From the NCBI GenBank assembly GCA_024704765.1, contig JAKMXF010000133.1, forward strand, positions 248,001 to 312,000: DNA of 64,000 bases, given 5' to 3'. Shown here in pieces: positions 23,764-31,166 of this stretch (positions within the stretch are counted from its first letter, which is position 1; each line of letters opens with the position of its first letter). The notes below the pieces were generated by a model, which saw only the letters and a list, made by a program, of their open reading frames with translations, made no database searches and had not been told where the DNA came from. The position numbers and the translations under genes are program-made. Source of the stretch: Oopsacas minuta. Lineage: Eukaryota; Animalia; Porifera.

Positions 23764-23930
23764 GAGTCAACTCCTGTTATATCGAACACGGATATATGGA
23801 AATACCTGCTTATATAGAAGTCTGAAATTATACAAATATGGTCCCAAACTGTCAAACTAAACAAGTTTTCCATCGGTTATATCGAAGTAATTATTGCAGT
23901 CCCTTGAGCTTCGATAACAGGAGTTGATTG
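23764..23930. mobile_element. pogo-like MITE with TA TSD, family B
   Basis: TA-GAGTCAACTCCTGTTATATCGAA ... TTCGATAACAGGAGTTGATTG-TA. Confidence 0.7.
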
Positions 23931-23953
23931 TATGCCATTTATAAGTTATAGCT

Positions 23954-24250
23954 ATGAGTAATAGTAATAAATGCTCAGAAGAACATTTCGACAGTATGAG
24001 AGAGAAGGTTTACCAGAGAATAATCCGGTCTAGACAAGATGATGTGAATCAAACTAAACTTGGTTATGAGAGGATTGAAAAGAAATTTGAAGAGCTCGAG
24101 GAGAAAATAGCAAAATTGACAGAGTTAAAGCAGAGAAAGAGTATAAGAGAGAAATACATTCTAATAATCGTTGGAGCTATTATTCTATTTATTCTATTTG
24201 TTCTACAGATGATATTTTTCCGAGAGAGAGAATGGAGGATTTTTAGTTAA
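23954..24250 (+). CDS. 98-aa coiled-coil protein with a C-terminal transmembrane helix; unknown family
   Basis: Heptad-rich IEKKFEELEEKIAKLTELK followed by YILIIVGAIILFILFVLQMIFF; TAG acceptor 2 nt before the ATG like neighbouring genes. Confidence 0.6.
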   Translation: MSNSNKCSEEHFDSMREKVYQRIIRSRQDDVNQTKLGYERIEKKFEELEEKIAKLTELKQRKSIREKYILIIVGAIILFILFVLQMIFFREREWRIFS

Positions 24251-24403
24251 CTAAAATTGTATGTGTCATGTGTGTGCGTCTTTTAATCACAAATTATTTA
24301 TATGAAATGTCTCTCGACAAGTGTTATACGTAGTTAAGAGTACAATATCAGTAAATGTACACAGAGGTGAATAGGATATTTATAAGCGATCTGGTTACAC
24401 AGG

Positions 24404-27400
24404 TTATGAAGACTTCTCTTGCAAGTTGAGGCGTTTTGATTTTCTAAAAATATACATATCAATTGTCTTATCCTCATTATTGTCGTGTTAATTATAGTGT
24501 CAGTTTGTAACACGTAAATAAATCTAATTAGTGACTTACCTTTGATATGGGAACTCGTTTATGCGATTTTCTCTTTCTTGGAGAATTCGTTCCTTTTCAG
24601 CTAGCAGTCTGTCTTTCTCCATAAGCCTTGATTCCCATCCTACACACAACAATACAATAATATACGTATAATGTAACCTCCACAAGCGGGGTGTCAGGGA
24701 CGCCGATGCTACCACGCTTCCCGTTAGTGGAGGTTACACTGTATACTTTTGTTCGTATTTAGTAATGGCAGTATTCGGGTCTCCAGCAGAGCAGGACATG
24801 TTAGTAGACAGTTTCTGCGGAATCACAGGTATACAAGCTGACAGAGCTAGGAACTATTTAGAAGCACATGTCTGGAATTTGGAGACTGCTCTCTCAACAT
24901 ATTATGACGACAATCCGGGAGGACACAGCCCGCAGGTTATCCAACAGCTCAGAAGTCCTGTTCCGAAAGGAGCGGATCCGAAGGCAGGAGGGTACACAAA
25001 TATGAAAGAGATGCGTATGGACCAAAGCAAGGAGATGGAAAAGAAAAAGAATGAACAGTTCTTTGCCGGGGGGAGTGACTCGTCTGGACAGATGATAGAA
25101 GGTCCCCCTAAACCTGATCTAGAGGATGACATAGTGACTAGCACCTTCAAGTCAGCTAAGGAACAAGGGGCAGAGAGTGCAGAAGAGTACCATCGAACTG
25201 CTAAGAATACGGATCCTGGACAATTCATGGGTACAGGAAGGAGACTAGGCAAGAGTGAGACAGAGGTTAGCAGAGAGATCCAGGGAGCTCCTCCACCCCC
25301 CAAGCCTAAAAAGTTCCATCTGAAATTCTACAAAGACGGTTTTACTGTGGATAATGGAGAACTGAGGAAGTTCGAGGATCTAGGAAGTAAGCAATTCATG
25401 ATGGCGATATCTAAAGGATATATTCCTGATGAATTAGTTAAAGAAGCAGGAGGACAAGAAGTACATTTGGAGATGGAGGATAATCGGGAGGAGATCTACA
25501 CGCCTTCTAAACCAAAGCTCCAGCCCTTCGGAGGTAGCGGGCAAAGATTAGGGAGTGTAGCTCCTGAAATAAAGACAAACCAACCAGAACCAATTCCAGA
25601 GGTGACAACAGCTGATACGGAAAGTAATCTCCCAATAATCAACACCTCTCTCCCTATCACTACTCTACAAATACGATTAGCAGATGGTACTAGACTAACT
25701 CAGAAATTCAATCACATGCACACTATTGCAGACCTGAGACTATTCATCTCATGTAAAACTACTCAAACAGAGAAAATATTTGTGATAATGACAACATTTC
25801 CCAACAAAGAATTGACAGATGACAGTCTTACACTCTATGAGGCTAATCTATTGAATGCAGTTGTTGTACAGCGATTCAAGTGATTAGTTATGTGTCATGC
25901 TAGTGTGTTAGGTGACTTGTTAGATAGTGAATGCCAATTACCCTAACAACAGTGTTGATTATATTGCAGAGGTTGCTATTAATAATATATACAAATCATA
26001 CAAATATAGTGATATTCAAATTTGCTTAATCGGGACAATTTCCAGGTATGATTCAGAGATATGAGAATTTTCGGTTAATCGGGAACTCTGCTTAATTAGG
26101 ACGAATTACATGGAAGGAATGTGTCCCGATTAAGCGTAAACGACAATAAAGTATGTGAAGTATTCGCCAGTTTATTAAAGTCAAATTCTTCTGAATTATT
26201 AATATATATATATTCCCTGCATTATACAATAAGTATGTGTGCAGCTAAATACCCTAATAATGAAATAGACACAACAGATAACAGAGACAATACTACCCCA
26301 TTCGATACTCTCTTTAAACTTTACAAAAAGAAAGTACTCTTATCAACTCTACCAGCTCCTATAGACTTACCCTCTGTTACAGCTGATTCAGAATGGAGCA
26401 AGCATTTGAAATTATTAAAACTTGACTACAGAGATGATTTCCATCATAACCTAGGCTTAAACTCTCCTTTAGATTGGGATTGTTACACCCTCCCTGAGTT
26501 ATACCCCGGGTTAATGTATATACCAAATATCTTCAAAGAGGGGTGCCAGTATCCATGGGTATGGAGAGCTATCTCAGCTTACAACTGTCTGCCTAACAAA
26601 TGCAATATAGATGCACATATACACCGTAGTGATAGAAAGAGACTATGGAATGCAGTAGAATGGACTGATATAAATCTTAAGGAAGGAATCAGACATAAAA
26701 TGAGAGATAACTTGATGTATCAACTAAGATGGACTACTCTAGGTTACCAATACGATTGGACTAGTAAAGTATACAGAGAGAAGGACTATTCTCCCATCCC
26801 TGAAGAATTAATACAATTATTCCAGTATATAGCTAATGTATTCGGGTACAAAGCATTCAAACTAGAAGCTGGTATAATCAACTACTATCATATAGATTCT
26901 ACTCTATCTGGTCATATTGATCAATCTGAATTTAACCTGGACGCTCCTTTGTTCTCACTGAGCTTTGGACAACCTGCTGTATTCTTGGTAGGAGGGGCTA
27001 CTAAAATGACAAAGCCTGTTCCTTTATTGCTACATAGCGGAGATCTGGTAGCAATGACAGGGCCTACACGACTAGCTTATCACGCTATACCTCGAATAAT
27101 AAAACAAGAATCTGATACTAAAGCCGTTACTGTTATAGATGATACAAGTAATTTAATTGAGGAACTGAGAAGCAAGGAAATGTATGGAGAAGTGGAAGCA
27201 GTCAAGAATTATATGGAATATTCTAGAATAAATATGAATATACGGGAAGTAGGGGTATTCCCTAAAACATAGATAAATACTAAATGTATTCTATACTTAT
27301 TCTATAAATGTTATATAGCATGGCTCAAGCAATAGATACTGAAGAAATAACTGAGAAATCAGATGAGAAACCAGAATTAACTTTCAAGTCTTTGGGTATT

Positions 27401-30040
27401 GTAGACGTTCTCTGTGAAGCCTGCCTACGTTTGAAATGGACTACACCCACTAGGATACAAGAGGAAGGGATTCCTCTAGCTCTAGAGGGTAAGGATATTA
27501 TAGGACTAGCGGAGACAGGTTCTGGTAAGACCGCAGCGTTCGCTATCCCAATCTTACAAGCTCTCCTGGAAAAACCTTCCAGATTATTCGCGCTTATTCT
27601 TACTCCAACACGTGAACTAGCCTATCAGATTTCAGAACAGTTCGAGGCACTGGGATCAGGGATAGGTGTTAAATGTGGCGTTATAGTGGGCGGTATGGAC
27701 ATGGTGTCACAAGCCCTCGTACTAGGTAAACGTCCTCACGTCCTTATAGCTACCCCTGGGAGACTACTTGACCATCTAGAGAACACCAAAGGGTTCAATC
27801 TCAAATCTCTAAAGTATCTAGTCATGGATGAAGCAGATAGGATACTGAATATGGATTTTGAAGTTGATCTGGATAAAATTCTTAAAGTTATTCCCAAACA
27901 AAGACACACATATCTATTCTCAGCTACGATGACTAAGAAAGTACAAAAGCTACAAAGAGCTTCTCTCAAGGATCCAGTTAAAGTAGAAGTATCAAGCAAG
28001 TACCAAACAGTGGAAAAGCTCCAGCAATATTATTTATTTATACCAGCCAAATACAAAGATTGTTATCTAGTTAGTATTATCAATGAGATGGCTGGTAACT
28101 CTTTCATGGTGTTCTGTGGTACTTGTAGCAATACCACACGTACAGCTCTGTTGCTACGGTCCTTAGGGGTGCAGGCTATCCCCCTAAACGGGCAGATGAG
28201 TCAGACAAAGAGGTTGGGGGCACTTAACAACTTCAAAGCTAAGCCTGGGTCTATCTTGGTAGCTACAGATGTAGCTAGTAGGGGGCTAGACATTCCGCAC
28301 GTAGATTTCATTATTAACTTTGATATCCCGACACATTCTAAGGATTATATACACAGAGTAGGACGGACAGCCCGGGCAGGGAGATCCGGTCGTAGCGTGA
28401 GTTTTGTTACCCAATATGACGTAGAACTCTACCAAAGGATCGAATTCTTAATTGGAAAGAAGTTACCTGAATTTCCTACAGTACAAGATGAAGTACTACT
28501 GTTAATGGAGAGGGTTAACGAAGCTCAGAGAATAGCAAAGATGGAAATGAAAGATTTAGAGGAAAAGAAGAAAAAGAGAAAAGTAGACGATGAAGATGAT
28601 AATAGAATTATTCCTTACAAGAAGAAGAAATATAGGAAATAAATTCAGTTCTCTATTAGCTAGTTTGTTATCATTGGAAGTAATATTAAATAGGGATATA
28701 CCACTTACTCAATAATTCCTTCTCCTTTGCCTGTAGTTCACGTTCTCTTGTTGACAATATTGTTGTTGTCCTCTCACGAGTGTGACTAACAAACAAATAA
28801 ACAATCATAAACAAGTCTAGGTTTATTTCATATATTAAATCTTACTTTCCAAATTCCATCTCTGCTACTTTGAACATTCTATGCGAGATTAATTCAGCTA
28901 TATCTGGTCTGGAGCAAGGCTAGAAACATGAAAATTATACGGACATAACCAGAGGGTAATTATGTGAAGTATTACCGATAATTGTAGCATTTTATTGATA
29001 ACTATTGCTAGATCTTGTGAGTATAGTTTAGGAGAGAATGGTTGATACTTTCCCGCTTTTATTTTCAGGAACAGAGCTGATTGATTAAGAGCTGTGAACG
29101 GAGGACTAGCAATAACAAACAACAAATAAACACAAATACCATCATACATATTAATACTTCACACCTCAACACACATAGCTCATATATAATACATCCTAGC
29201 GCCCAGATATCTGATTTTTCGTTATAAGCCTCATTATTCAACAGTTCCTATTAACAACAAATATTTGATATGAAAATTTACACGTTTTGACACATAAGTA
29301 CTCACAGGTGACATGTAGTAAGGTGTTCCCACAAATGTAGTAGCGAAACTAGAGTTATGCGCTAATATCCTAGCCAAACCGAAGTCTCCTAACTTGATAT
29401 TAAGAGAACTGTCTAAGAATACATTCCCGGGTTTAAGATCTCTGTGTATAACTTTAGCCATGTCTGATTTCTGACGATAATGACAGGCTTGTAGAGCTTG
29501 TAATAGTTGCTGGAACCATTTCATAACGAGATTAGCTTCAAAGGGTTTTCTTTAGCAATAGGAAATAATAGAAAATTTCCATAGAATAGGAACGGTGATA
29601 CTTATTTATTTATTCAAAAAAAGTTTAAGCCTACCTTTTGGGCTTTTGCCTAGCAATGAGAGAAGACAGATCACCCCCAGAGCAATATTCCATTACAATA
29701 TAGAGTCTTAAAGTATTTTTGTCTATTATTCGCTGATAGTACTTTACAATGTGCTCATGTCTTAACTCCCTCAGTAGATTAACTTCTGATACTAGCATCT
29801 GTTTCTCGTTATCTGACATTAATCCGTAATCCAATTCCTTCCATACGAGTATCTATACAATGATATTGTGTATTAATAATTATGCGAAAGACGGATAAGT
29901 TATGAGCTCTTTGCGTCGAGCCTAGAAGCATTTCTGGAAAATATACATACTTTTGAATCTGTTTTTCGTCTAATTTTCTTACAAACACCGAAAGAACCTT
30001 TCCCTATCTGTTCTAGAACTTCATAATCCTTCAATTCCAT
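24404..30040 (-). CDS. NEK2: NIMA-related kinase NEK2; exons include 30040-29951, 29852-29635, about 29560-29306, two short kinase exons near 29250-28990, about 28919-28846, 28785-28709, then 24639-24540 and 24443-24404
   Basis: [26 protein letters not shown] / [10 protein letters not shown]...SEVNLLREL / [12 protein letters not shown]...DFGLARIL...[11 protein letters not shown] / KSDIWALGC; the coiled-coil tail REREL..KEKELL continues in phase into [26 protein letters not shown] beyond a 4069-nt intron. Confidence 0.85.
24669..24741. mobile_element. 73-bp TA-flanked MITE, family C
   Basis: TGTAACCTCCAC(A)AGCGGG / CCCGTTAGTGGAGGTTACACTG inverted repeats; a lone similar TIR (TAGTGTAACCTTCATAAACGGG) lies near 6487-6508. 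Confidence 0.65.
24765..25883 (+). CDS. NSFL1C: p47 / NSFL1 cofactor (UBA-like, SEP, UBX), nested in the NEK2 intron
   Basis: FCGITG...[11 protein letters not shown]; [11 protein letters not shown]; [18 protein letters not shown]...GYIPDEL; [10 protein letters not shown]; [14 protein letters not shown]...FPNKEL. Confidence 0.95.
   Translation: MAVFGSPAEQDMLVDSFCGITGIQADRARNYLEAHVWNLETALSTYYDDNPGGHSPQVIQQLRSPVPKGADPKAGGYTNMKEMRMDQSKEMEKKKNEQFFAGGSDSSGQMIEGPPKPDLEDDIVTSTFKSAKEQGAESAEEYHRTAKNTDPGQFMGTGRRLGKSETEVSREIQGAPPPPKPKKFHLKFYKDGFTVDNGELRKFEDLGSKQFMMAISKGYIPDELVKEAGGQEVHLEMEDNREEIYTPSKPKLQPFGGSGQRLGSVAPEIKTNQPEPIPEVTTADTESNLPIINTSLPITTLQIRLADGTRLTQKFNHMHTIADLRLFISCKTTQTEKIFVIMTTFPNKELTDDSLTLYEANLLNAVVVQRFK
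26023..26136. repeat. Inverted-repeat element (decayed MITE) upstream of ALKBH1
   Basis: GCTTAATCGGGACA / TGTCCCGATTAAGC perfect 14-bp inverted repeat, plus internal copies GTTAATCGGGA and GCTTAATTAGGAC. Confidence 0.55.
26235..27272 (+). CDS. ALKBH1: AlkB homolog 1 dioxygenase, nested in the NEK2 intron
   Basis: [62 protein letters not shown]; first ATG at 26235 (the GTG start at 26121 lies in a repeat). Confidence 0.93.
   Translation: MCAAKYPNNEIDTTDNRDNTTPFDTLFKLYKKKVLLSTLPAPIDLPSVTADSEWSKHLKLLKLDYRDDFHHNLGLNSPLDWDCYTLPELYPGLMYIPNIFKEGCQYPWVWRAISAYNCLPNKCNIDAHIHRSDRKRLWNAVEWTDINLKEGIRHKMRDNLMYQLRWTTLGYQYDWTSKVYREKDYSPIPEELIQLFQYIANVFGYKAFKLEAGIINYYHIDSTLSGHIDQSEFNLDAPLFSLSFGQPAVFLVGGATKMTKPVPLLLHSGDLVAMTGPTRLAYHAIPRIIKQESDTKAVTVIDDTSNLIEELRSKEMYGEVEAVKNYMEYSRINMNIREVGVFPKT
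27320..28642 (+). CDS. DDX47: DEAD-box RNA helicase DDX47/Rrp3, nested in the NEK2 intron
   Basis: [31 protein letters not shown]; [14 protein letters not shown]; ATG 27320 follows a TAG acceptor (in-frame ATG at 27308 is an alternative). Confidence 0.95.
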
Positions 30041-30110
30041 ATTTATAGCTAATTCAAAACATAATTTATTGTTGTTTACTTGCTTTATTAAATAAATAAT
30101 ATTGGAATAT

Positions 30111-31166
30111 TTATGATTGAATTTCAGAGAGTTTATTTCTAATCTCAGATTCTTCTCTAATCAGTTTCTGCTCCTCCTCTTCAATCTCATTAAGTTCTCT
30201 AGTGAATCTCTCTTTCAAGAACGGATTTGTAGTTCCATCAATCCTACTCTTTTGTTTATTTAGTTTTACTCTAAGTGATTTCAGTTCTTTACTCATTTTA
30301 TCTAAGTCTTCTTCCAATTTTAACTGTACACTATTATCAATTTCTATCTTGGGATGTGTGTCTATCTTATCTTGAATCAGGTCTACTTGCTCTTCAATAA
30401 TATCTTCTATAGGCTCAGGTAGCTCTTCTAAAACTTCCCCCAGATTAACTAGAGGATTATTTTTATCATCCTCCTCATCAGAAGAACTTACTTCACCGAT
30501 AAGATTAATGCCAGAGGCTGGAGGGGTCGATTGTACAGGTACACAGAGTTGTCCTTGGTTCAGTGACATCTCAGCTGATGATATGTCCATGAGTTCCTTA
30601 GGCGTAGCTGGGGTGCCAGGGGGTCTAGCCTCCTCGTCAGTCAAGAGCTCAAACTCCACATTAACAGCTTCTGCATCCTCCTTCAACAATCGTCTAACTT
30701 CACTCTCAATCTCTGGGGAATCGATTAATTTTTTGAGTGCTGTTTTCCTAAACCTCTTTTTACGTATATTTTTAAGTGGAGGTGTGATACCGTGTTTCCA
30801 TTGATATCTTCTCTGTAGCTGATTTCTCTGTTTAAGTGTCAAATCATTTATATCATCGCATGGCATATCAAAGGGTTCTTCACTACACACAATCATTTGT
30901 CCGATATTCCCAGATTTGTAAAGTGTCTTTTTGTCTAATGTCTTATTAACATCAATAATACAAGGGAGATCAACTGCTCTACCATATAAGGTATTATCAT
31001 CAAATCTTAATTTACAATTTCTACCGTCATGTCCTATTTTTATTTGTAGTCGCTCCTCTAGGGTGTCTGTTGTTATTGATTTGGCTACCTGTTGGGCTAC
31101 ATGAGGGGGGAGGCGAAGGAGGCAATGTTGTTCTAGCTGTCCTATTCCGTACTCTTGTTCTGTCAT
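30111..31166 (-). CDS. TAF7: TFIID subunit TAF7
   Basis: LEQHCLLRLPP, VDLPCII, LYKSGNIGQM, HGITPPLKNIRKKRFRK, C-terminal NPFLKERF coiled coil. Confidence 0.93.
   Translation of the reverse strand: MTEQEYGIGQLEQHCLLRLPPHVAQQVAKSITTDTLEERLQIKIGHDGRNCKLRFDDNTLYGRAVDLPCIIDVNKTLDKKTLYKSGNIGQMIVCSEEPFDMPCDDINDLTLKQRNQLQRRYQWKHGITPPLKNIRKKRFRKTALKKLIDSPEIESEVRRLLKEDAEAVNVEFELLTDEEARPPGTPATPKELMDISSAEMSLNQGQLCVPVQSTPPASGINLIGEVSSSDEEDDKNNPLVNLGEVLEELPEPIEDIIEEQVDLIQDKIDTHPKIEIDNSVQLKLEEDLDKMSKELKSLRVKLNKQKSRIDGTTNPFLKERFTRELNEIEEEEQKLIREESEIRNKLSEIQS

Follow-up and report, generated by a model that had tools for sequence, protein, structure and literature searches.

The genomes of glass sponges carry abundant nested genes, that is, genes lying inside other genes, and these arrangements are often conserved (PMC10282587). 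In Aphrocallistes vastus, 2432 nested genes have been counted, making up 12.4% of all genes, while the annotation of Oopsacas minuta, with an assembly of 61,460,524 bases in 365 contigs (PMC10282587 Table 1; PMC10280926), contains only 83; the authors ascribe such low counts in some genomes to the gene-modelling method (PMC10282587). On the protein side, the cell-cycle kinase NEK2 is characterised by an unusual leucine zipper. In the human protein, leucine occupies each seventh residue and the other core position is taken by Lys/Arg (+3) or Glu (+4), over about six heptads, and this zipper is required for dimerisation and activation (PMC3149346).

Here we describe a locus of O. minuta in which these two subjects meet. 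It lies in a stretch of 64,000 nucleotides (the window, to whose first letter all positions are counted) and comprises a NEK2 gene whose proposed intron 7 contains p47/NSFL1C, ALKBH1, and DDX47. The locus resembles the nested genes of A. vastus and other glass sponges (PMC10282587) in that intronless guests sit in a host intron of a compact genome, are conserved between species, and have been missed by automatic annotation. It differs from them in that three guests share one intron, all of them are antisense to the host, and the dimerisation motif of the host is split. We did not find the NEK2 nest described in PMC10282587. Nesting itself is already known for glass sponges, and the NEK2 locus is a further case, not a new kind of genome organisation. 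It is nevertheless a clean case of an intron that holds several antisense guests, conserved across five genomes, and it supports the published view that the annotation of O. minuta, with its 83 nested genes, badly undercounts nesting when set against the 2432 of A. vastus. Its practical value is the correction of a truncated public gene model. We put the probability at roughly 0.85 that NEK2 splices across the 4069-nt intron 7 with its three complete antisense guests to give a kinase of 351 aa.

Exon structure of the host gene

The host gene was modelled with nine exons on the minus strand, from 30040 to 24404. Exon 1 (29951–30040) begins with the ATG at 30040 and corresponds to residues 1–30 of the public protein P0124. 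Exon 2 (29635–29852) was assigned to the kinase domain by mapping of P0124 and by the Pfam Pkinase model, which matches the NEK2 exons. Exon 3 (29306–29549) contains the catalytic loop, the DFG motif, and the activation segment, and its top match among solved structures is human NEK2 (E 9e-26), with NEK7 at E 5e-15. Exon 4 (29165–29247), exon 5 (28976–29105), and exon 6 (28846–28919), the last of which holds the end of the kinase domain, were placed by sequence reading together with the mapping of P0124. The named protein relatives retrieved by word search are the NEK2 proteins of many animals. Judged by sequence, the host kinase domain resembles NEK2 more than any other NEK kinase.

Exon 7 (28709–28785) encodes the linker and zipper heptads 1–2. 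It ends with ...KEKELL a|GTAAGT, so that the donor at 28708 lies in phase 1, exactly where a reading of the sequence alone had put it; the same donor appears as A|GTAAGT, A|GTATGG, or A|GTATGT (A|GTAWG) in the five genomes compared below, always in phase 1. The next exon in the model is about 4 kb away. Exon 8 (24540–24639, 100 nt), which starts with RWE... and encodes the rest of the zipper heptads, is bordered by tag|GA TGG and CAA AG|GTAAGT. It is entered in phase 1 after a good pyrimidine tract and left in phase 2, and it is present as a single copy in the O. minuta genome. The claim that this orphan exon fits the phase of exon 7 is borne out by its frame and its splice signals, both of which are kept in five genomes. 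Intron 8 (24444–24539) has 96 nt in the window and 54–63 nt in the relatives, and exon 9 (24404–24443, 40 nt) adds a short basic tail, KSKRL..., and closes with the TAA stop that had been expected there. Intron 7 (24640–28708) has 4069 nt in the window and 3817–4777 nt with the same content in the relatives. The remaining NEK2 introns are as short as had been supposed, measuring 56–98 nt by the exon coordinates, and the gaps between the aligned blocks of P0124 agree with these values within a few nucleotides.

The public protein P0124, deposited as "Nek2-like isoform X2 [Oopsacas minuta]", has 312 aa and maps exactly onto exons 1–7. It then continues through the exon 7 donor for 8 codons and stops at 28686. 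The closing tail, SKWYIPI plus stop (28686–28708, minus strand), most probably represents the first nucleotides of intron 7, and the sequence past the donor varies in composition and length in every one of the five genomes. Since P0124 ends in a read-through tail, it appears truncated, as the sequence-only reading had predicted for automated annotation; the spliced nine-exon model has 351 aa. Exon 7 alone supplies two heptads, so the 312-aa model is without most of the zipper. If the nine-exon model is right, the public O. minuta NEK2 is short of four of six heptads in the motif for dimerisation and self-activation, and whatever is concluded from it about cell-cycle or centrosome kinases in sponges would be wrong. 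A word search with NEK2 recovered no other glass sponge NEK2 protein (117–371 aa) from the protein pool searched.

Several further elements were looked for around the gene. Acceptors lying shortly past the exon 7 donor (at about 28662, 28655, and 28632) lead only to hydrophobic tails that are not conserved and that pass through DDX47 in antisense, and these were rejected as partners. An Rfam scan of 23800–30200 gave no match, and a tRNA search gave none either.

Guest genes inside the proposed intron 7

The three guests, all of them housekeeping genes, occupy 24765–28642 on the plus strand, between the point where the host exons stop (28709) and the point where they restart (24639). The first, p47/NSFL1C (24765–25883), is a single intronless ORF with UBA, SEP, and UBX domains, which is the p47/NSFL1C architecture. 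The second, ALKBH1 (26121–27272, with the likely start ATG at 26235), is likewise intronless; its top match is to solved ALKBH1 structures (E 1e-57), and the gene calls in the relatives have 351–359 aa. The third, DDX47 (27308–28642, with a likely start at 27320), also lacks introns and shares 78–80% identity with named animal DDX47 proteins. By their single ORFs, their full domain coverage, and the intact ORFs in the relatives, the three guests are complete genes. The coordinates and domains therefore agree with the earlier proposal of a 4069-nt intron holding NSFL1C, ALKBH1, and DDX47, all intronless and co-oriented on the strand opposite to NEK2. Because of this opposite orientation, the guests cannot share the host transcript.

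Within the intron, the guests are closely spaced. From 25883 to 27320, the p47 stop and the ALKBH1 start are separated by 240–350 nt, and the ALKBH1 stop and the DDX47 start by 35–47 nt. Tightly packed genes on the same strand, as the guests are, could form a trans-spliced operon.

Conservation across five genomes and the proposed split zipper

Four relatives were found through a word search with DDX47, whose proteins in metagenome assemblies have 90–94% identity, and we took them for other glass sponges. Their contigs (L008/L009, L010/L011, L012, and L013–L015), taken with the window, bring the comparison to nine contigs from five distinct genomes. All relatives have their genes in the order ARMT1 (−), small gene (+), p47 (+), ALKBH1 (+), DDX47 (+), NEK2 (−), and TAF7 (−), and in the synteny comparison that the sequence-only reading had pointed to, the same order and the same three guests in intron 7 recur in all five genomes. 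Between the small gene and p47, the alignment of the five genomes contains two conserved blocks, and these coincide with exons 8 and 9. Splice signals form the edges of the blocks: the TAG| acceptor, which is conserved, the donor, which is GT in three genomes and GC in two, and the TTTAG| acceptor. Intron 8 and the flanks barely align.

The constraint on exon 8 is of the kind expected for a coding exon. It measures 100 nt in every genome but one, where it has 94 nt; both lengths are 1 mod 3. The codon formed at the junction of exons 7 and 8 is AGA in three genomes and AAG or AAA in the others, which encodes Arg or Lys throughout. Between distant genomes, most differences affect third codon positions, with dN/dS of 0.08–0.33 and pS of 0.50–0.72, close to saturation of the synonymous sites; in the closest genome pair only 5 of 96 sites differ, which makes that pair uninformative for dN/dS. 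On these substitution patterns, exon 8 is under coding-type selection. The sole in-frame ATG of exon 8 in the window is replaced by GTC, ATC, or TTT in the other genomes, and p47, on the opposite strand, starts only about 125 nt from exon 8. With no conserved ATG and so little space before p47, exon 8 needs an upstream coding exon.

Three minor features adjoin the 3′ part of the gene. In two relatives, the donor of NEK2 intron 8 is AG|GCAAGT (L008:7323 and L013:7475), a GC donor, and in the window and the other two genomes it is GT. Just past the exon 9 stop (24370–24395, minus strand), the window, L008, and L013 share a conserved block, CCAGATCGCTTATAAATATCCT, of about 22 nt, which the two genomes at greater distance do not keep. 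The block may serve NEK2, as a polyadenylation element or an element of its 3′ UTR, or it may be a signal for a neighbouring gene. A small ORF of 98 aa (23954–24250, plus strand), with a coiled coil, a C-terminal hydrophobic segment, and no Pfam match, occupies the same place in all related contigs (calls of 92–110 aa) and is convergent with the NEK2 3′ end.

The residues on the two sides of the junction form a common pattern. In each of the five genomes, with residues numbered from the junction, leucine stands at −16, −9, and −2 in the tail of exon 7, and Leu, Ile, Val, or Met at +6, +13, +20, and +27 in exon 8. These seven zipper positions stay in one unbroken register over the junction in five of five genomes, with Lys/Arg (once Trp) at +3 and Glu/Asp at +4 of the heptads. 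A zipper of the NEK2 type is found only when exon 7 is joined to exon 8. The earlier suggestion that a NEK2-type coiled coil continues into the far exon thus agrees with heptads that remain in register in every genome compared.

The similarity of exon 8 to individual NEK2 proteins is more limited. Exon 8 aligns with residues 298–325 of Nematostella NEK2 (WEKSL...), right after the match of the exon 7 tail, and this is the best score among 240 proteins; it lies above all 2000 composition shuffles and has p ~0.05 under heptad-preserving shuffles. Under the latter shuffles, the matches of exon 8 to NEK2 proteins other than that of Nematostella are not significant, and an exon 8 profile compared with solved structures (PDB) returned only chance coiled-coil matches, human NEK2 not being among them. 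The evidence for the zipper is therefore one of pattern and register, not of clear sequence homology.

One of the closest described systems is human NEK2A, which shares with the sponge model a NEK2-type kinase domain followed by about six heptads with a core of Leu and Lys/Arg or Glu (zipper residues 305–335; PMC3149346). The human protein has 445 aa and the sponge model 351 aa. Unlike human NEK2A, the sponge model has only 5 residues of exon 8 and a basic tail of 13 residues past the zipper. The C-terminal motifs of vertebrate NEK2A, namely the PP1-binding KVHF, the KEN box, and the MR tail, are not family-wide and are not required outside vertebrates. None of the three is present in the end of exon 8 or in the exon 9 tail of the sponge model.

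Rival readings and age of the nest

From the conservation in five genomes, we infer the splice from 28709 to 24639 and host transcription across the guests. RNA polymerase would pass through NEK2 intron 7, in which the guests are transcribed in the opposite direction; the transcript would then be spliced from 28709 to 24639 and from 24540 to 24443. The predicted product is the 351-aa kinase, with a six-heptad NEK2-type zipper split by intron 7, with two of the heptads encoded before the intron, in exon 7, and the other four after it, in exon 8.

Both forms might be made, the spliced 351-aa kinase and, through intron retention or early transcript end, a short form of 312 aa. The open frame indeed ends 8 codons past the donor and, by reasoning from the layout of the locus, early termination would be plausible in an intron of 4 kb that three transcription units cross in the opposite direction. 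Against this stands the tail itself, which is unconserved in sequence and in length and makes a selected short isoform unlikely; also, no canonical AATAAA or ATTAAA was seen on the minus strand just past the stop. We consider the production of both forms unlikely, though still worth weighing.

A related idea is that the nest acts as a regulatory device, in which transcription of the guests sets how often polymerase and spliceosome reach exon 8. In that case, the ratio of the dimerising, activatable 351-aa NEK2 to the zipper-less 312-aa form would be coupled to guest activity. We regard this as speculative and attach little weight to it.

Distinct from both is the reading that NEK2 ends by read-through at 28686 with 312 aa, and that the exons in 24639–24404 belong to another, unannotated gene or to a tiny independent ORF, whose mRNA might begin with a spliced leader added at the acceptor at 24640. 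P0124 is annotated to stop at that point, spliced-leader trans-splicing exists in glass sponges (PMC10282587), and a word search with the stop-free frame holding exon 8 found no transcript-derived peptide spanning the junction of exons 7 and 8 in that collection. A separate gene, however, would have to manage with a conserved frame in which neither exon 8 nor exon 9 keeps a start codon across the genomes, and with no space for an upstream exon before p47. For NEK2 itself, the read-through tail is unconserved, yet the donor and its phase are conserved; the zipper register and the Arg/Lys junction codon would become coincidences repeated in five genomes, and the resulting protein would retain only two of the six heptads. 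On balance, an end of NEK2 at 28686 with a separate gene beyond it is improbable.

Least probable by far is that 24639–24404 is conserved as non-coding DNA, for instance as the 5′ UTR or promoter region of p47, or as the 3′ terminus of the adjacent small gene. In its favour are the position between two plus-strand genes and the short block past the exon 9 stop, which is also conserved in three genomes. Set against these are changes mostly at third positions of the minus-strand frame (dN/dS 0.08–0.33 between distant genomes), exon lengths that keep the frame, splice signals that coincide with the borders of the conserved blocks, and an unconserved intron between them.

The arrangement of NEK2 exons and guests is common to all five genomes, and by this distribution the nest is old and predates their split. 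As an outgroup, we compared NEK2 of the demosponge Dysidea avara (L016). Three NEK2 intron positions are common to Dysidea avara and O. minuta, after ...YYMSP, inside ...ELC.L|S, and after ...LL.x before P. The equivalents of exons 6–8 form one exon in Dysidea avara, so that introns 6 and 7 of the glass sponge gene have no counterpart there. The lack of an intron at the intron 7 site suggests either that the glass sponge line gained the intron or that Dysidea lost it; this species is the only outgroup compared, and it is uninformative on how the nest arose. Insertion of a whole gene block into a host intron, as the sequence-only reading proposed, would be one possible origin.

Intron 7 of O. 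minuta also contains a palindromic dispersed repeat (24671–24738), some 30 nt before the acceptor of exon 8, which is species-specific at this site and absent from the same site in the related genomes. The repeat is about 70 nt long, with a 12-bp terminal stem and an RNA fold of −36 kcal/mol (z −4.85). It gave no match in Rfam. At least 17 copies, with 76–94% identity, occur in the O. minuta genome, and by its structure and dispersal the element looks like a small MITE-type insertion.
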